Positions 4,426 to 51,479 of a stretch of DNA of 64,000 bases are shown here, piece after piece. The DNA lies in assembly GCA_019828565.1 (NCBI GenBank), contig JAHDYR010000030.1, positions 62,001 to 126,000 of the forward strand. The letters run 5' to 3'. The notes beneath the pieces were generated by a model. The model searched no databases. It saw only the letters and a list, made by a program, of their open reading frames with translations, and was not told the DNA's origin. Position 1 is the first letter of the stretch. Every line of letters starts with the position of its first letter. This DNA is from Carpediemonas membranifera BICM. Its lineage: Eukaryota > Protista > Fornicata. The translations under genes and the position numbers were made by a program.

Positions 4426-5595
4426 ATGCCGTCAGGTGACGAGGAGTACCCCCCTTTCCGCGAGATATGCATGGTTTTCGCCCTGGGAGACCACTCGTTG
4501 TCTTGCATCAACCACAATAAGAGTTTCGGCGATAACGTCACTGAAAACGACCTGAAGTTTATCATGCTGCATATAGCGAAGAGCATTGAAGTTACCCACA
4601 GCTTTGGCGTCGCCCATAGGGACCTGAAGCTCGCCAACATCCTCGTCCAGGAGAACCGGTGCCAGCTCACAGACTTCGACCTGACCCGCCGCCTGAGGTC
4701 CCGGAACGACAGCCCTCCGCTCACAGGCAAGGTCTGCACGCTTTGGTACCGCCCGCCCGAGTGCTTCCTCCAGACGCCATCGCCGACGATGAGGAATAAG
4801 GTGCATATCCGATACGACCGCAAGATTGATATATGGTCTCTGGGGTGCATGATGTTCGAACTTCTGACAGGCAAGGTTCTCTTCCCTGCGAAGCCGAAGG
4901 CCAACGAAGACGGCGAAGAGATTGCCATGCGCCTCATCTACTCGATGATCGGCACCCCCGCCTCCACCGGCTGGGCAACCGGGCTGGACCTGCTCCGGCA
5001 CAGGTACGCTAGGCCCGAGCTTGCCCCGCCCGCCCGGGACACAGGCTTCGTGCCGCCCGTGCCCTATCATGGTGTTGCCGCATATCGCCGCAAGCAGCGT
5101 GATGATCTGACACTCGTGGCCATGCCGACGGAGGTCAGGGCCCACCCGGTCGTCCAGGAAATGCTCGACCCGAAGGCCCGGCGCCCCATCAAGAGCGACG
5201 ATAGTCTCTACCTCGCAGTAGACCTCATGATGTGGATGCTGGATCTCGATCCAGACCGCCGGCCCACCATACAGCAAGTCCTGGGCCACCCCTGGCTGAA
5301 GTCGACGCAGGTTAAGGACGCCCCCAGTCCTGAGCGGTATGAGGTGGACTTCCCCCGACTTATCGGGCGAGAGGCGGGACCCTGTCTTGATATACGGCGC
5401 GCACGGGAGGAGGCGTTGAGGAGGAACCAGCAGTCCAGCATATCAGTGCAGCCACGACCCTTGCCGGCCACTGCGGGGGTCGTGGGCCAGGGGCGGCAGG
5501 CCTACCTCGCCCCGACCCGGAGGGGCAGGGGTGCAGGCGTGGGCAAGAGGAAGCTGCCGGATAGAGGGAGGGGGAAGCGGGGGAGGTACAATTGA
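4426..5595 (+). CDS. CDK-like Ser/Thr kinase, C-lobe only; probable pseudogene or pseudokinase
   Basis: HRDLKLANIL, VCTLWYRPPE and DIWSLGCMMFELL are present; DFG is changed to DFD. No intact Gly-loop or VAIK in frame, with a possible decayed remnant IIGQST upstream near 4100. Confidence 0.7.
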   Translation: MPSGDEEYPPFREICMVFALGDHSLSCINHNKSFGDNVTENDLKFIMLHIAKSIEVTHSFGVAHRDLKLANILVQENRCQLTDFDLTRRLRSRNDSPPLTGKVCTLWYRPPECFLQTPSPTMRNKVHIRYDRKIDIWSLGCMMFELLTGKVLFPAKPKANEDGEEIAMRLIYSMIGTPASTGWATGLDLLRHRYARPELAPPARDTGFVPPVPYHGVAAYRRKQRDDLTLVAMPTEVRAHPVVQEMLDPKARRPIKSDDSLYLAVDLMMWMLDLDPDRRPTIQQVLGHPWLKSTQVKDAPSPERYEVDFPRLIGREAGPCLDIRRAREEALRRNQQSSISVQPRPLPATAGVVGQGRQAYLAPTRRGRGAGVGKRKLPDRGRGKRGRYN

Positions 5596-10165: not shown

Positions 10166-11311
10166 TTAAAATACATATGCATTCATCAGAAGCATCAGCG
10201 CCACGGCCACCAACAACACAGCACCGCTCCCCCCGGCAACAACCAGGCCGGTCTGCCCCCGAGCCTTAGCCTTCGCCGGGGACTCGGCCGGGACATGCTC
10301 GGGCTGGGGCTGGGAGGACCGCTCGGCTTCTAGGCGGAGGCCGTGTGCAGAGAGCACAGCCTGCCTAATTTTCCCCGTCGTGACCATGGTCTTGCGTGTA
10401 TCAGTCGCCAGCCTGACAAGCTCAGCCTCGAGCTCATCTCTCTCTGCGCTGACGGGCGGGGGTCTCCTCCTCGTCTCGGCCAGACTCCGGACAAAGGACT
10501 CCCGGTCGTCCTCGAGCTGGGCAATCGTCTCCTTGTGCTCGCTGATGGTCTGCCCCATGGCATGCAGCGACTCTCGGGTGGCGTCTCTCTCCTTGGTGTG
10601 ATGCTCGAGCATGTTCGCCCACTTGGCCCGAACACTCTGCTGCTTCGACTCAAGCGAGTCAACAAGATCGTCCGCGCTGATCTTCTCATTGGCGAGTCGG
10701 TGGTCGATCGTCTCGACCATCTCTGTGGCATCTGTCACCACCATGAGCTGGTCGTGGTTGGCCTCCAGCTCACTCCGCATCCGCTTGGCCTGGGAGAGGA
10801 GAGTAGTCAAAATGTCGATTACTACCGCGTTCTCCTTCTGAACGCTGACCTGCTGCAGGGCTTGGACAGTCGGGTCTGGGTTGGTGGTCGGGGTGGGGGT
10901 CTTGCGGCGGAACGACTTCAGACGCTCGAAACTGCTGGCGAGAACAGTGTCGACATCGAATTCACAGCGCTCGACGGGGGGTTTTGAGCTTTGGGGCAGG
11001 GGTTGTGCGTCCTTGAGGCACTCCCAGCTGTACGTCGAGGCAAAGGCGTCCACATCAATGTCCGACCATAGTTGCGCCAGCACAGTACCCACTGGGGTAC
11101 GGGTGATCTGGTCGCGGGAGAACAGCTTCGAGATCGCCCGAGGGGAGCCCGCAGAAAAGAGAATGGGGGATGTGGATGAAGTGATGTTTGGGGTCATCCC
11201 GCTGCGACGTGGGTTGTAGTCTTTCTTATTCCTGGTTGCCACGCGCCCATCAGAATGGATCATGAGGCCGCCCGCTTCTGGCTCCAGCACTGCGGCGTGG
11301 TTTGCAAGATT
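10166..11311 (-). CDS. Coiled-coil protein with C-terminal TM (tail) anchor; 5' end interrupted by element A
   Basis: Long ORF with heptad region and terminal AVLLVAVALMLLMNAYVF. The first 33 codons of the track ORF (11312-11410) are element-derived. Confidence 0.7.
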   Translation of the reverse strand, partial: NLANHAAVLEPEAGGLMIHSDGRVATRNKKDYNPRRSGMTPNITSSTSPILFSAGSPRAISKLFSRDQITRTPVGTVLAQLWSDIDVDAFASTYSWECLKDAQPLPQSSKPPVERCEFDVDTVLASSFERLKSFRRKTPTPTTNPDPTVQALQQVSVQKENAVVIDILTTLLSQAKRMRSELEANHDQLMVVTDATEMVETIDHRLANEKISADDLVDSLESKQQSVRAKWANMLEHHTKERDATRESLHAMGQTISEHKETIAQLEDDRESFVRSLAETRRRPPPVSAERDELEAELVRLATDTRKTMVTTGKIRQAVLSAHGLRLEAERSSQPQPEHVPAESPAKAKARGQTGLVVAGGSGAVLLVAVALMLLMNAYVF

Positions 11312-11980
11312 GCTAGAAGGCGGGACGATGTATGAACGAGAGGAGCGTACTAAAAATGGATGCTGCTTCTTCCTTTCTGGCAGGCGAGGCGTATGCGGAT
11401 ATCCAGGCATGTTGCGTTGAGTTTTTCAGAAACGAGCAGGTTAAGGCTTTTCGTCTGTGGTATTTACAGGTTTATGGGTTTATGTGGAGGATTCATGTAA
11501 AGGTGACTTAAGCTGTCGACCCCCCTGGGATGAACTCCAGAGGACTGAACAGGTTCAGTCTGACGGCCCACCTGTCGTACACCAGAAGAATTTACACTCA
11601 AGTATTCTTATCCTGCGCGGCACACTACCTCCACTCACCCACTTCAGCCCTCGTCTGTGCCATCGGTCTGTCGTGCTTTCAGTCGTCGGTCTGCACGAAA
11701 AGATGCGTCGTCCATCGTCTGTGTCGAACGCTGCTGTCTTCTTTCGCGTCTGTGCTCGTCTGTTACGCGCTCATCTGTCGTCCATTGCCGGCGTCTGAAG
11801 CTCATGTCGTCGTCGTCTTCGTCATCTTCGTCTGTTGTGAGAGACACTAGTGGTGGAAAGCGGTTGTCGAAGGTCGTGCGGAGTCGCATGGAGTGAGTCC
11901 CAGTCTCCGGAAGTGGTTCACCCGATACGCCAACTCTGTGAAGCTGTGGCTCGCCCGCGCCGGATCCTGATGCCCACCTC

Positions 11981-12799
11981 ATGGGGTTCGACCCGGGCGC
12001 GAGGTCCATCGGAGGGTATTACATCAGGCACCCCGATGGCACCACCAGCTCCGGCGTCCTCCCAAAGTGCGGATACACTAAGACGCCAAGTTTCGGCTTT
12101 GATATGACGGCCGCGTCGTTCAAGAGCACAAGACTAGTGAGTATCAACAACTCTATTAGGTCTGTGCTGGACAACGCGAACGACATTTTCGAGGCTGGAA
12201 TGCGTAAGTCTTTCCGCCGAGTGCGCTTTGCGAACCACATCCTTCGCCAGAAGCACTTCGCCCGCTGCGGCCAACAGTTGGCTCGGGAGTTCGGTTGGCT
12301 TCGCCACCATCCCATCGCCACCCCCATTCGCCTGAAAGCCTTCTACGGGAGCTCGGGATTCACCACGCCTACTGGTATGTTCATTCCTTGCGCGCCATAT
12401 CGAAAGTTCGCGAGAGAGATAGCACCCCTTCTCAAGAGGCATAACATTGTCGTCGATCTTAACATGGTTAACGAGGACCGCACCACCGTCGTCTGCCCTC
12501 ACTGCCACGCCCCCTACAGGCGAGTTCGTCCGCGTGATGACCAGCACGTTCACCCACATCGTGTGATGCTCTGCGAAAAACCACAGTGCCATGGTGCTCA
12601 GTGGCGCGCAACAGTTCCTGATGCTCTGAATGTTGATCATCGGGACAAGAGTGCTGCAAAGAACATCCTGTGGCGTTCTCTTGCCACGGAAGATGAGCTC
12701 AGTGGCTCTCCGTTCAGTCGCACATCGATCCCACGTCTTCAAACATCATTCCAGTATCATCAATTGGCTAACCGCCAACATTCGTCTACGGACGGATGA
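11981..12799 (+). CDS. Fanzor1/TnpB-family RuvC nuclease, N-terminally deleted (272 aa)
   Basis: RuvC-I GFDPG, bridge-helix-like FRRVRFANHILRQK, RuvC-II VNEDRTTVVCPHC, second Cys pair CEKPQC, RuvC-III HRDKSAAKNI. Confidence 0.85.
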   Translation: MGFDPGARSIGGYYIRHPDGTTSSGVLPKCGYTKTPSFGFDMTAASFKSTRLVSINNSIRSVLDNANDIFEAGMRKSFRRVRFANHILRQKHFARCGQQLAREFGWLRHHPIATPIRLKAFYGSSGFTTPTGMFIPCAPYRKFAREIAPLLKRHNIVVDLNMVNEDRTTVVCPHCHAPYRRVRPRDDQHVHPHRVMLCEKPQCHGAQWRATVPDALNVDHRDKSAAKNILWRSLATEDELSGSPFSRTSIPRLQTSFQYHQLANRQHSSTDG

Positions 12800-12900
12800 T
12801 GTTGTGCAGTTTGGCACTTTGATCGTTCTTTTCGGGCCCTGTCTGGGAGGTTCGAACAATGTGTTTATACTGCGCAACACGTCCGTGAATGGGTAACTAT
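12764..12900 (+). ncRNA. Putative omegaRNA scaffold of element A
   Basis: Hairpin ttggc/gccaa, then a ~113-nt stem (cattc/gaatg, acggacg/cgtccgt, tgttgtgcagt/actgcgcaaca), then terminal atgg-gtaa-ctat. Element B has the same architecture. Confidence 0.6.
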
Positions 12901-13216
12901 CTGAACCGCAGTGGCCATCGTTCCCTTTGCTGGACAGTCCGCCCTCCTGGCGTGTTCGTTTGTGAGTCAGCATGAGTATCTAAGCGAATGCCTGGTTATG
13001 GTAAATGTGCCAGCCACAACCTGGACAAACCCCACTCGTGAGGTGGTTCTCCTTTAAAGGCTGACCTTTGTAAACACCGACAGCATAGCCAGTCATGGAA
13101 CGGTGGCGGGTCTCCATGGATGGCATTGTCGATGCGTGGCTGCATAAATGAAGGCTTCACCCCAGCGAGAACGAGAAATGAGTTGAGAATTTAATGGCGT
13201 CCGTCATTTATTACGT

Positions 13217-13651
13217 CTACTTGAGAGGTACAAACTTAGACGACTTCGTGGCACCAACACCGGCACGACCATGGTTGACGGGCTTGTAGGTGAGGGAGAA
13301 CTCGCCAAGGTACTGGCCGACCATCTGGGGGCGGACCTCAACAAGCATGAAGGACTGGCCGTTGTAAACACCGATAGCAGAGCCGATCATCTCGGGAAGG
13401 ATGATCATGGAACGGAGGTGGGTCTTCACGGGAACGGGCTTCTCGCCAGCGGGGGCAGCAAGCTTGGCGTCACGGAGCTTACGGAGAAGAGTAACGTGCT
13501 GGCGCTTGAGGCCACGGCCGAACTTGCGGCGGCATCTGGAGGAAAGGAGGGGAAGTACCTCGTCCACGGGCATGCGAGCAAGATCCTCCGCATCAATTCC
13601 ACGGTACAAAACGCGCCTGAAAGCCTTCTTACGCTCCTCGCGGGTGGACAT
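13217..13651 (-). CDS. RPS15: 40S ribosomal protein S15 (uS19)
   Basis: [52 protein letters not shown]. Confidence 0.97.
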
Positions 13652-17150: not shown

Positions 17151-17912
17151 CACCACGATTGCTTATCCTGCTGAAAGTACCCAGATGTCTCACGTCTCAG
17201 CGCGGATCTCCGAGCTTCCTTGTTCATGAGCCTTGAAGCCATAGTAGCTGCCAACAATGTGGCATTCTCACCAGATTCTTGACAGTTTTGCAATGTGTTC
17301 ACCGATGTTTGGCTGGGTACTATAATGCCAAATTGGGAGAATTGACACGGAATAGAGATGCTCTTACGTAGGTCTGCGGCTCCGCGGTGATGGGCACCGC
17401 ACGCCAGGAACGGCCTGGCCTACGATGGGAACGGGCGGAGGGCACTGTAGTCCCGCCCAATCAATTGATGAATTGATTTGGCACATGCTGGAGAGAAATG
17501 GCCGACAAGACGGCGGCCACCGCTTCGCTCCTGAGGCGAGCACCAGGCGTCGGGCGAGTCTCCCGACAGCCGAATTCACGCGCGAGACCTGGAGGTCGAC
17601 CCGTAAATTCACTCCCCCCCCCGTTAGGTTTGGCTAGACAGCCGAGGCGTCTGCCAAGTCAGACGAGCATTATTGCTGTGTACATAATCTGTGTTGTTCG
17701 TTCCGTACTCAGGTGGGTCGCGTAGGGGCGACGAGCCGACCGTCAAGGTCGGTCAAATGATGGGATCAATTCGGCTGGCCACAATTTCGTTTCGCCGCCA
17801 AGATGACGTAAATCTTCTTCCCCCCGTTGTTTTATGGAACAGTAGCGCAGCGGCGTAGCCCGCACTTGTGTTGTCGGGTTCCGCAGGGGACAAGCAAATT
17901 CGAATTTTTACA

Positions 17913-48310: not shown

Positions 48311-48480
48311 ATGGTATCCATGGGAAGCTGTATCACTGTGCTGCGCAGGATTAGAATTGTTGAGTCCAAAACACACAGTGATCCAAGCAGCATCAGGATC
48401 GCAGTGTGGTTCATCATACTCTATCAATCGTGCGCAGCATATCTCGCGCGCTGCAGCGCGTGCTTGCTCAACTTAGCAAG
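48311..48480 (-). ncRNA. Putative omegaRNA scaffold of element B
   Basis: Hairpin cttgct/agcaag, long stem tgctgcgca/tgcgcagca enclosing cacac..gatcc/ggatc..gtgtg, terminal atgg-ata-ccat. Confidence 0.6.
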
Positions 48481-50164
48481 TTAATGATAGCGAGGAAGAG
48501 CACCTCTCCGGGAGTCGTAGTGGAAAGGAGATTGCTCTATCTGATCTGAAGTTGCATCGAAGGTGCACCAAAGGATGTTCTCGCTGGCGCTCTTATCTCG
48601 GTGAGAGAGATTGAGAAGTATGTCTCTCTGCTCGGGATGCCGACGAAGCCGTTCAACGCGCCATGGAGCTCCCTCGCACGCGGGATTCTGGCAGAGCATG
48701 GTGCGGTGTGTGTGCACCACGCGTCTGAAGTGTGCTTTGCAGTATGGGCACACGATGGAAGTGCGGAATTCGGAGACCATCATGACACTCACGACGACGT
48801 TGTGCCGGAGCATGATGCCAGGGAGAGCTCGAGCAAAGTGGCGGTACGGTGCACAGGAGGGAGTGCCGGCGGAACCGAACAGTGCAGCCCCATACACGAC
48901 TGCTGCGCTCATATTCACGCGGAAAGAGGGGGTGGCAGTGTAGCCACACTTAGCGAGTACGCCAGATACACTCTGCCTGTCTGGGCGGCGGATCGTGTAG
49001 CCGCCCAGCGACCGAGCACCAGGGTCGAAGCCCATGAGAGCTTGAATGTCCGGGGCAGGAGTAGCCTCGGCGTCATCCTGACCGAGCCGAGCCCGCTTGT
49101 TGCTGCTACCCTTTTTGTACGTGGGCCGGTCAGCCACCCGACCGCCACGGTATTTCTCGCGACCCACCCAAACCGTCACAGCAACAGAGACCCCGTCAGT
49201 CTTCACAGAGAGCACTCTGCGGAGCTTGGTGATGTCGCCGTGATCACGCTCGTATCTATCAACCTGCTCAGTGGTCTAGTTCTTAGTTGCTGACCAATTC
49301 ACGTGCACACGGAGGCGCCTCTTCATCGCTGGGGTGAGCGCTGTTACTCCGCGCTCGATGGTTATGAACCCAGGCCTGACCGGTGCCATCGGCACGAACG
49401 GAACGAGCTTCGGCTCTGGCAGGGCCTGACTGAGCTCGAGGTTCACGGCACGAGTGAGTGTGACCAGCTTGGTCACTGCAGCACTCATGCGCGTGACGCA
49501 CGACAGCACGCCGACGAGGGCCTCGGCCACGGTACCAGTGCGACCCACCCGCTGCTCCTCGGGCAATGCATGCATTTGTCGATGATGCATGTCATGATCG
49601 GCGGATATTGCGGCAACCTCAGTGTCGAGCTCGCCTAGGGTGTCGAGAAAATCCTGTCGAACACCCTCATCATGGAGGAGCGGACGCACCCGGTCTAATC
49701 CAGCACGAAGACGGGTCAGGTACCCGGGTGACGCGCGCGAGAGCCAGACCCGGGTGGCTGTGGAGTACTCGCCCAACCAGCTCTGAAATGGCGCTGCAAT
49801 TCCAACGTAGGCTTCCTTGAAGTCCCGGACGAGTGGGGTTATGTCAGGGTCCCTCCACATCGCCAGGTCGCCAATCCACCTGCACCGATCCGCTGCCTTT
49901 GCCTTGGACTTTTCCCTTGGCAATGCTGACGATCTGCGCGAGGACCTCCTGGTCGAACAGGTTGGCCGTCCTCGGTGGGGTCAACGCGTGCGCAGATGCA
50001 GAGACGCACGCAAGCAGGCAAGTGAATGTGTACTTAGCCTGCGTGAAAGAACGCATGCCGGGTTCAAGATTTCCTCGCCGCGGCGCGTTGTTATCGCCTC
50101 CGCCGTTAATCTCGCCAATGGCCTTGTTAACGGAAACCTTCACCGTGTATATCTTGGAAGGCAT
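48481..50164 (-). pseudogene. Fanzor1-like gene with a +1 frameshift (~49915), in-frame TAG (49276-49278) and ~74-aa deletion
   Basis: MPSKIYTVKVSVNK, SVKTDGVSV, GFDPG, VSEFRTSIVCPYC, CQNPAC, HRDKSASENI. Confidence 0.85.
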
Positions 50165-50897
50165 CGGAGTCTATTGAGCTGCCTGCATCGATCATTTCTT
50201 TTCAGGGTTCATCAGCCTGCAGCATCCCTCAAAACACAAGAAACCAGCATCATACAACACAAAGCGTCTTTACTACCAGCTACAACCGCTTTCCATCACT
50301 AGTGTCTCTCACAACAGACGAAGATGACGAAGACGACGACGACATGAGCTTCAGACGCCGGCAATGGACGACAGATGAGCGCGTAACAGACGAGCACAGA
50401 CGCGAAAGAAGACAGCAGCGTTCGACACAGACGATGGACGACGCATCTTTTCGTGCAGACCGACGACTGAAAGCACGACAGACCGATGGCACAGACGAGG
50501 GCTGAAGTGGGTGAGTGGAGGTAGTGTGCCGCGCAGGATAAGAATACTTGAGTGTAAATTCTTCTGGTGTACGACAGGTGGGCCGTCAGACTGAACCTGT
50601 TCAGTCCTCTGGAGTTCATCCCAGGGGGGTCGACAGCTTAAGTCACCTTTACATGAATCCTCCACATAAACCCATAAACCTGTAAATACCACAGACGAAA
50701 AGCCTTAACCTGCTCGTTTCTGAAAAACTCAACGCAACATGCCTGGATATCCGCATACGCCTCGCCTGCCAGAAAGGAAGAAGCAGCATCCATTTTTAGT
50801 ACGCTCCTCTCGTTCATACATCGTCCCGCCTTCTAGCAATCCTTACCACAATCACTTAACCTTAACCTGCGAAAATTGGGGACATTTTGGTCACGCG

Positions 50898-51479
50898 ATG
50901 AACAATACGACGGCTGCGCGCTTCCAGTCGATGTCTGTGTTCATGACAAAGTTTAAACGGGTGCAACAGAACCTGTTTGCTCTCCAGCAGGAGAATCAGC
51001 GGCTCCGTGCAAAGATGAAAGCCACTGTCGCGGAAACTGGGCAATGCCGCAAAGAAGTCCAGGAGAAACAGCGTCTTGAGGCTGAAATGGAGATACACTA
51101 TGCCCAGGCTCAGAGTACGCAGGACCGGCAGCAGATCCGCGCCCAGGACCTCGAAACCCGTCTGAAGCAGCTGAGAGAGCACCGCAAGGACCTAATCAAG
51201 TGCTCACGGCAGCAAAAAGAGCAGTGCGACTCTGCCAAGATGGTCTTGGCCAAGTTCCAACAGCTGTTCACGGAGACGGAAGCTGAGGCAATCAGCACGA
51301 CCGAGCGGCTCGAGAGCCTGGCAAAGGACAAGATCAGGCTCGAGCGGGCACTCCAGCAGCGCCACACGGATATCACCATGCTGGAGCGCCGTAACGCCTC
51401 AGCGAGTGACTCACTGAAACAAATGACGGCACTGCTTGTCGATGGTGCGAGCCGGCCCGAGACCCGGACCAGTGGATGA
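50898..51479 (+). CDS. Coiled-coil protein; element ATG at 50739 is in frame upstream
   Basis: Heptad-rich ORF. Confidence 0.65.
   Translation: MNNTTAARFQSMSVFMTKFKRVQQNLFALQQENQRLRAKMKATVAETGQCRKEVQEKQRLEAEMEIHYAQAQSTQDRQQIRAQDLETRLKQLREHRKDLIKCSRQQKEQCDSAKMVLAKFQQLFTETEAEAISTTERLESLAKDKIRLERALQQRHTDITMLERRNASASDSLKQMTALLVDGASRPETRTSG

Follow-up and report, generated by a model that had tools for sequence, protein, structure and literature searches.

A truncated recombinant copy of a putative Fanzor-like element family in Carpediemonas membranifera and a terminus that the family shares with Ty3/Gypsy long terminal repeats

We analyzed a 64,000-nt stretch of the genome of the protist Carpediemonas membranifera BICM (assembly GCA_019828565.1, contig JAHDYR010000030.1, positions 62,001–126,000 of the forward strand; hereafter the window, to which coordinates without a contig refer). 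At 11308–12879 it carries one copy of a multicopy element with an open reading frame (ORF) for part of a putative nuclease of the TnpB/Fanzor superfamily. We consider it likely that this copy is a dead recombinant remnant of a Carpediemonas-specific Fanzor-like family moved in trans by an integrase-type enzyme. The window copy by itself is an ordinary dead fragment; the family behind it is real, a Fanzor-like lineage that has diverged very far and is unusual both in its carrier and in its choice of target, and we found no published description of it.

Anatomy of the family and of the window copy

The window ORF (11981–12799, + strand) codes for 272 amino acids (aa) beginning with MGFDPGARS, and in-frame stop codons are present upstream of 11981. 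The RuvC-I Asp (D4, in GFDPG) is encoded at 11990–11992, the RuvC-II Glu (E165, then RTTVVCPHC) at 12473–12475, the zinc ribbon (C172/C175 in CPHC and C198/C203 in CEKPQC) at 12494–12589, and the RuvC-III Asp (D222, in HRDKSAAKNI) at 12644–12646, all on the + strand. A first-pass annotation of this DNA had given the 272-aa ORF with acidic residues at 11990, 12473, and 12644 and four zinc-ribbon cysteines, and all are where it put them. The triad thus has the order D, E, D with the zinc ribbon between RuvC-II and RuvC-III, and the contexts G-F-D-P-G, E-D-R-T-T-V-V-C-P-H-C, and H-R-D-K-S-A-A-K-N-I are of the TnpB type. Both Asp residues and the cysteines are invariant in three subfamilies, and the Glu is missing in one decayed copy only. 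The ORF begins at an internal Met and comprises only RuvC-I, a helical insert, RuvC-II, the zinc ribbon, and RuvC-III. As the same annotation had reported, there is no transposase: neither the ORF list nor a profile scan of 11296–12879 gave a second ORF with a transposase signature.

We searched the genome assembly (24.2 Mb, 69 contigs) with the window ORF and obtained at least 145 matches, which fell into groups at ~95% and ~55% identity; with so many matches, a chance origin of the ORF pattern can be set aside. A third C-terminal type (P0036) is present in ~25 copies at >90% identity. Longer copies have open frames of up to 719 aa; the 674-aa frame of the full-length copy L006 has GFDPG ~400 residues in, and the start of the family protein, MEIYTIKAS, is seen in P0041. 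The complete family protein would appear to be ~630–670 aa long, with a DUF8286-like N-terminal region followed by a RuvC domain with an inserted zinc ribbon, a very divergent protein of the TnpB/Fanzor type.

About 30 independent A-type loci end sharply at the same positions (reference 171/172 and 2398/2399) and span ~2.23 kb. The first-pass annotation had proposed a mobile family in an anaerobic-type protist, and both points hold. The left end begins with TGTGCTATTGAAGGG and the right end closes with CTGCGCAACA. The last 30–33 nt of the right end recur as a direct repeat from 13 nt inside the left end, which gives a ~40-nt TGT...ACA unit at each end of intact copies; the right unit of the window copy is at 12841–12879 (+ strand). 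Every left unit opens with one and the same 17-mer, whereas 31 of the 35 right units open with a 10-mer of their own. Genome-wide, the left-end 17-mer occurs 169 times and the right-end 17-mer 265 times. Five-base-pair target-site duplications (TSDs) were perfect in 18 of 30 A-type copies by script, and in at least 20 of 30 when two left-extended copies are counted; three or four further A-type copies have a TSD with one mismatch. In the two extended copies (L004 and L042), the usual left end is preceded by 12–26 additional nt, either TGTGCAGTACAG or a form of 26 nt, and the TSDs of these copies (GGATT and GCTAC) enclose the extension. Intact A-type copies thus have terminal direct repeats, TG...CA ends, and a TSD in the 4–6-bp range of LTR retroelements; the window copy has no TSD.

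Among ~33 copies examined, none carries a gene other than that of the nuclease, and the transposase that a genome-wide search might have turned up was not found in any of them; nor does the family have terminal inverted repeats (TIRs) beyond TGT/ACA. Internal deletions are frequent. One class, in which 172–422 is joined to 1090, occurs at five loci with different flanks, and the deletion derivatives include elements of ~80–140 bp. Two minimal derivatives, G000:C7:146037-146115 (~79 bp) and C1:817946-818084 (~139 bp), contain little beyond the two terminal units. Because the copies encode only the nuclease and deletion derivatives have multiplied, movement must have been in trans, and the nuclease is not needed in cis; the family is recent and mobile. 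Two copies, L021 (C65:305509-309315) and L023 (C65:327781-331584), are inverted relative to each other and 22 kb apart, and the left TSD (CTCAC) of one is the right flank of the other, as after a recombinational inversion between copies.

The window copy is assembled from parts of two subfamilies. Its first 560 nt (11308–11867, + strand) are a B-type 5′ block, a near-exact inverted duplicate of 50841–50282 (99.8% identity, other strand), so that the repeated left end claimed in the first-pass annotation is confirmed. The source of this block is a B-type element at 48337–50850 (− strand), which has a 5-bp TSD (GTGAT at 50851–50855 and 48332–48336), the motif GCAGGTTAAGG at 50860–50870, a coding frame that is broken and has a deletion, and a second terminal unit 292 nt inside its left end. 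In the window copy, this internal B-type unit (TGT...ACA) is at 11573–11624 (+ strand; equal to 50525–50576) and is a direct repeat of the B right-end unit (48337–48370 vs. 50525–50558, 82% identity); homology to C8:731988 begins at 11591. A weak likeness to the B-type terminus reaches ~11296, beyond the edge of the near-identical tract at 11308. Mapping to L006 assigned 11867–11958 (+ strand) to a short A-type segment, reference 767–858, and 11949–12879 (+ strand) to the A-type 3′ part, reference 1468–2398, the two being joined at a 10-nt microhomology. The deletion of 859–1467 (L006 coordinates) is common to the window copy and C1:1032344 (L032).

The window copy lacks the ~360–400 N-terminal residues found in longer copies, its ORF being the C-terminal 272 aa only and not a full-length nuclease. 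It has neither the A-type left end nor a TSD (flanks TGCGG vs. CGTCC), and the 20 nt after its right end (12880–12899) have no TSD partner on the left side. Because it is chimeric, holds only the C-terminal half, and has no TSD, the copy is probably dead, a truncated recombinant of two subfamilies. The start of the 272-aa ORF at an internal Met is best read as an accident of this remnant. Its 5′ 560 nt would have been acquired from the other subfamily by a very recent exchange with the element at 48337–50850, which would have left the catalytic C-terminal 272 aa and the hairpin right end in place, with the N-terminal half and the family left end gone.

Two different host-side ORFs, at 10166–11410 (− strand) and 50739–51479 (+ strand), run outward from the B-type left region and have identical first 34 residues (MPGYPHTPRLPERKK...). 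These residues are encoded within the repeat, either as a chance extension of the frame or as a start supplied by the element.

Relationship of the nuclease to TnpB and Fanzor

The protein is very probably homologous to the TnpB/Fanzor superfamily, as judged from profile matches below threshold, language-model neighbors, and motifs. No single homology test is significant, yet all agree in direction. In the hidden Markov model search that the first-pass annotation had suggested, PF07282 (Cas12f1-like_TNB) was the top or sole nuclease-related Pfam match in members of all three subfamilies (E = 0.0013–0.95), with a best score of 19.3 bits (E = 0.0013) vs. a cut-off of 26.3 bits; in the Pfam scan, the match was absent from P0030 (whole) and P0029. 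The match spans residues 140–229 of the window ORF. The NCBIfam profile guided_TnpB (NF040570) gave E = 0.075. When a profile of the C-terminal domain was searched against 177,635 PDB sequences, Cas12f chains 9nzo/9nzr came first (E = 0.059, also below threshold), aligned on RuvC-II and the zinc ribbon, where the RuvC-II segment pairs with D-x-x-H-T-S-Q-T-C-S-F-C of the Cas12f chain.

Language-model neighbors point the same way. In the Atlas, 22 of the 30 neighbors of P0009 have PF07282 and/or DUF8286 (score 0.97), and the nearest clusters are 600–700 aa long and mostly from giant viruses. The N-terminal 330 aa of the A type, which do not include RuvC, led by themselves to DUF8286 clusters in 18 of 30 neighbors (0.91–0.92). 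Furthermore, the order D...E...CxxC...CxxxxC...D with its TnpB-type context is constant over three subfamilies at 50–57% identity, and a basic patch resembling a nuclear localization signal (NLS; KRKxRERLG) precedes RuvC-I in the family protein.

Other searches returned only the family itself or nothing of use. When 5.8 billion proteins were searched with a family profile, all 46 matches came from Carpediemonas membranifera (J8273 locus tags), so that no homologue from outside this organism aligns; phmmer with the 674-aa copy gave no match among PDB sequences, and the full-length family profile matched only coiled-coil noise in the PDB. Such results are what one would expect if the protein were an unrelated zinc-ribbon protein of a lineage-specific repeat, outside TnpB/Fanzor: every database match is below threshold, and a fold was not obtained. 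We regard this alternative as improbable, since independent weak signals converge on one family and the triad and zinc ribbon stand in the exact TnpB order and context, invariant across subfamilies.

The proposal of a Fanzor1 transposon family in the first-pass annotation can therefore be retained in part: motifs and subthreshold matches support a TnpB/Fanzor-type RuvC domain with a zinc ribbon in a multicopy mobile element, and the assignment to Fanzor1 itself is plausible, given the length of ~630–670 aa and the DUF8286/PF07282 language-model neighbors. Like Fanzor1 (e.g., SpuFz1; PMC3627910, PMC10432273), the family has a single large ORF in a multicopy eukaryotic mobile element with many nonautonomous copies, a C-terminal RuvC domain with an inserted zinc ribbon, a long N-terminal region that is DUF8286-like by language-model features, an NLS-like patch before RuvC-I, and a structured noncoding 3′ end that reaches the element boundary. 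Unlike Fanzor1, it matches no Fanzor or TnpB significantly in sequence and is without TIRs. Its copies are bounded by terminal direct repeats and 5-bp TSDs, and in place of an adjacent target-adjacent motif (TAM) there is an oriented 13-nt motif at a distance of 10 nt from the left end. One of the two termini is common with a Gypsy long terminal repeat (LTR), and the host belongs to Metamonada, a lineage that the Fanzor papers searched do not mention.

With Cas12f and the TnpB of IS200/IS605, the family shares the motif order, the contexts E-x-x-T-S-x-x-C-x-x-C and D-x-x-A-A-x-N-I, and oriented insertion beside a fixed left sequence, and its best PDB profile matches are Cas12f chains. It differs from IS200/IS605 in having no TnpA, a hairpin at the right end only, and a protein longer by ~250 aa, and in making TSDs, which IS200/IS605 does not. 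An IS200/IS605-like, hairpin-ended element was considered and rejected: the left end is unfolded, TSDs are present, and there is no second ORF or Y1 TnpA.

Right end, guide, and target motif

An 80-nt hairpin (12800–12879, + strand) ends exactly at the element right end; the terminal unit recurs, inverted and diverged, as the left arm of this hairpin. The segment 12780–12879 folds at −47.4 kcal/mol (z = −6.9; 0 of 200 shuffles as stable), with a main stem of 12800–12810 paired to 12869–12879, which bears out the structured 3′ tail noted earlier. The left end gave no such fold (z = +1.3), and the hairpin is at the right end only. Folded as sense RNA, the hairpin shows 5.7 G:U pairs at −31 kcal/mol over 28 A-type copies, and folded as antisense RNA, 1 G:U pair at −20 kcal/mol; the B-type hairpin is without this asymmetry. 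Between A and B, pairing of the outer stem is kept by a double change (TGTTG/CAACA to TGCTG/CAGCA). The A-type hairpin has the appearance of a sense-strand RNA structure, and it may be either an omegaRNA-like scaffold or a mobilization signal. A scan of Rfam and of bacterial promoters and terminators gave nothing relevant. RNA of the family exists, because P0044 is an ORF from a EukProt transcript assembled with Trinity. In other copies, the 3′ half of the ORF is covered by contigs from two small runs (type uncertain), and some of these contigs pass the equivalent of 12879 into the flanks, which is compatible with read-through RNA but is no proof of it.

The first-pass annotation had put the right end near 12900 and a guide at 12901–12920. 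Family homology stops at 12879, so this guide is misplaced: a flank-derived guide would begin at 12880, and the flank at 12880–12899 (+ strand), as located by mapping of the family end, is the only place where it could start. The TAM proposed at the other end, GAT(T) at 11308–11311, is just the edge of the 99.8% identical tract, and intact copies have a variable 5-bp TSD there. Nor does the family as a whole have a fixed TAM adjoining the site that a flank guide would match, because it is the variable TSD that directly adjoins the left end, and the next five bases outward are unconserved; conservation returns at −23 to −11. RNA guidance of the family nuclease is compatible with this anatomy, but a simple homing scheme of the IS200/IS605 style does not follow from it.

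One could still suppose that the window copy is a working OMEGA unit (obligate mobile element-guided activity), with an omegaRNA at ~12760–12900 and a guide at 12901–12920, cutting empty alleles next to a GAT(T) TAM. Its catalytic residues are intact, the 3′ hairpin is strong and has the excess of G:U pairs in sense RNA given above, and the scheme agrees with known TnpB/Fanzor biology. It is nevertheless highly improbable and already contradicted by the end coordinates: the right end is 12879, the ORF is short by ~360–400 N-terminal residues, GAT(T) is inside the repeat, and the copy is chimeric and without a TSD. A predictable target therefore falls away for this copy, which lacks the family left end, has only the C-terminal 272 aa, and is not a working unit.

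The conserved sequence outside the left end is a 13-nt motif, KCGCAGKWTAAGG, present at −23 to −11 in one orientation in ~30 of 32 copies and followed by 10 variable bases. In the matrix of 32 copies, G/C/A/G at −21 to −18 occur in 26, 26, 26, and 22 copies, and T at −15 in 28. Counts of the core GCAGKWTAAGG are 8 in the window, where 0.08 would be expected, and 937 genome-wide, against 64 for a reversed control. Of 33 insertions, 11 have the start ATG of an ORF of ≥100 aa no more than 40 nt past the right end, vs. 14% of random positions. Several free motif sites in the window are just before start codons; for example, an Hsp70-like gene (~17145, − strand, start MVAVGIDLG) starts 11 nt after the site at 17171. 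The elements thus insert in one orientation, 10 nt downstream of the 13-nt motif, and the motif itself is often found just upstream of host start codons. We propose with modest confidence that the motif is a compact promoter-like element. The broader possibility of a general core promoter was rejected, because the exact motif is missing from the 150 nt upstream of the 29 long ORFs of the window and a test centered on the motif was no better than random positions; only the test on insertion sites was enriched.

The motif (GCAGTTTAAGG) also occurs once per 3943-bp unit of a tandem Gypsy array (G000:C1:899760-911600), between the integrase and the next reverse transcriptase (RT). The 10-mer GCAGKWTAAG is found inside long host ORFs at 5307, 6269, 30585, 43618, and 45659, each time in coding orientation and in one common codon phase (x-Gln-x-Lys); at three of these five sites, the 10-mer is followed at a distance of exactly 66 nt by an in-frame ATG. 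The host gene next to the window copy (13217–13651, − strand) codes for a ribosomal protein of the S19/uS19 family (PF00203, E = 9e−30).

Carrier and mode of movement

The left-end 17-mer forms at least 12 direct pairs spaced 4551–4555 bp apart, and 11 of these pairs enclose a match to RT_RNaseH_2 on the opposite strand at a constant offset of 1888–1903 nt, with open frames of up to 1165 aa. Because the offset is constant, we read the pairs as copies of one young Ty3/Gypsy family of ~4.6 kb. Read on the pol strand, the final 31 nt of its LTRs are complementary to those that open the Fanzor element. This candidate helper was placed by coordinates only; in profile searches for RT (PF00078) and integrase (PF00665), it was not among the best 150 candidates scored. 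Relative to its 24 Mb, G000 has a very heavy Ty3/Gypsy load: at a first look, candidates numbered 1519 for RT, 782 for RNase H, and 716 for integrase. At three loci (C11:577549/577555, C13:393623/393631, and C15:129046/129053), a Fanzor left end stands opposite a Gypsy LTR end that has the same 31-nt terminus, with 5–7 bp in between; one target site may have been used repeatedly there, or the two may stem from a joint event.

Retroviral-type integrases produce TG...CA ends and 5-bp TSDs. Given such ends, such TSDs, and an LTR terminus in common, the integrase of this or a related Gypsy family is the best candidate for the mover, and the shared 31-nt terminus suggests mobilization in trans by such an enzyme. 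The most likely mover would then be an integrase-type (DDE) enzyme of the ~4.6-kb Ty3/Gypsy family, the one with the 31-nt LTR match to the left end. In LTR replication, U3-R-U5 is rebuilt at each cycle and the two LTRs of a copy come out alike. The two terminal repeats here always differ, which argues against plain LTR replication; the left units open with the 17-mer, and 31 of 35 right units with the 10-mer.

Two accounts of how such an enzyme is used carry about equal weight, and we hold each to be possible but doubtful. According to one, the family is a nonautonomous LTR retroelement, similar to terminal-repeat retrotransposons in miniature (TRIM) or large retrotransposon derivatives (LARD), with the Fanzor gene in antisense, and is copied via RNA by Gypsy RT and integrase. 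The TG...CA ends, the 5-bp TSDs, and the terminal direct repeats fit, as does the 31-nt terminus in common with Gypsy LTRs whose pol is opposite to the strand of the Fanzor ORF. The chimeras and microhomology deletions are what template switching would give. Weaker points are a 19/24-purine tract on the pol-sense strand that abuts one unit, like a polypurine tract, and the hairpin that adjoins the other unit, as in self-priming Gypsy elements. This account has to contend with outer 9–13 nt that differ between the two units in all copies, a second B-type unit 292 nt inside the left end, a hairpin that is stabler as sense RNA than as the presumed genomic strand, and another terminus that is not common with the helper; a 2026 review also states that evidence for a Fanzor-encoding retrotransposon is lacking (PMC13565253).

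According to the other account, the family is a DNA transposon moved without an RNA intermediate by a DDE transposase or integrase from elsewhere, and the shared 31 nt reflect capture of, or convergence on, an end that the enzyme binds. Left and right ends that are fixed but unlike, the constant TSD length, and many internal-deletion derivatives down to ~80–140 bp, like miniature inverted-repeat transposable elements, would suit it, and the Fanzor carriers described are all DNA transposons (PMC3627910). Yet TIRs are wanting beyond TGT/ACA, ~33 copies hold no candidate transposase, and the sole element found with the common terminus is a retrotransposon.

The comparison with TRIM/LARD and with Ty3/Gypsy targeting is similarly divided. 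The TG...CA ends, the 5-bp TSD, the short terminal direct repeats, and the terminus in common with an autonomous Gypsy are alike, and insertion at a short fixed distance from a promoter-like motif resembles targeting by Ty3/Gypsy integrases; Ty3 inserts at RNA polymerase III start sites, and Tf1 at promoters. Unlike TRIM/LARD elements, the family has repeats that are never identical and only ~40 nt long, a nuclease cargo, a fixed orientation, and a second terminus that is not common with the helper.

A number of results weigh against the explanation that we prefer, that of a Fanzor-like family moved in trans by an integrase-type enzyme. On the side of the protein, no profile match reached its curated threshold, an exhaustive phmmer search of 1.84 billion representatives gave 28 matches that were all from the family itself, and AlphaFold2 models were too poor for a fold search, with a pLDDT (predicted local distance difference test score) of 36.9 when the whole protein was modeled and of 34.8 when only its C-terminal domain was. 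On the side of the carrier, the right-end 10-mer CTGCGCAACA was absent from the helper Gypsy LTRs checked (contigs 1, 3, and 11), so that one terminus only is shared, and the outer 9–13 nt of left and right units differ constantly, each end having its own version (30 of 30 left, 31 of 35 right). Contigs of uncertain run type, from which RNA ends are unreadable, give no evidence of an omegaRNA. The exact motif was not found within 150 nt upstream of the window's 29 long ORFs, and for this reason the promoter label is weakly based.

With respect to known carriers, Fanzors have been described in Mariner, Helitron, IS4, Sola2, MuDR, IS607-like, and some unclassified elements, which are DNA transposons (Bao and Jurka 2013, PMC3627910). 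Saito et al. 2023 name Gypsy/Ty3 only as insertions near Fanzor loci (PMC10432273), and the supplements of that paper that were examined do not contain the name Carpediemonas. The 2026 review knows of no retrotransposon that encodes a Fanzor and states that such an element would have nothing to gain from one (PMC13565253). The literature searched contained no paper in which Fanzor or TnpB is paired with Carpediemonas or Metamonada.

We tentatively propose that a Fanzor-type RNA-guided nuclease is the sole cargo of a nonautonomous element that depends on a Ty3/Gypsy integrase, perhaps on the whole replication machinery, and that lands in one orientation ~10 nt past a promoter-like motif. The landing site would be at or close to the point where host transcription starts, and a host promoter would read into the nuclease gene. 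Fanzors are the only RNA-guided DNA nucleases known from eukaryotes. Their presumed carriers are cut-and-paste DNA transposons, in which a cut at the emptied site helps to restore the transposon. If the proposal is true, the family would be the first Fanzor tied to a carrier of the retrotransposon type, and the usual rationale for TnpB/Fanzor, the restoration of an excised transposon, would not apply. The protein, being far in sequence from every known TnpB, would make a useful outlier for structure and engineering. Confirmation would widen the host range of Fanzor to a metamonad and extend the kinds of carrier, and it would raise the question of what role a nuclease plays in an element that possibly never excises.

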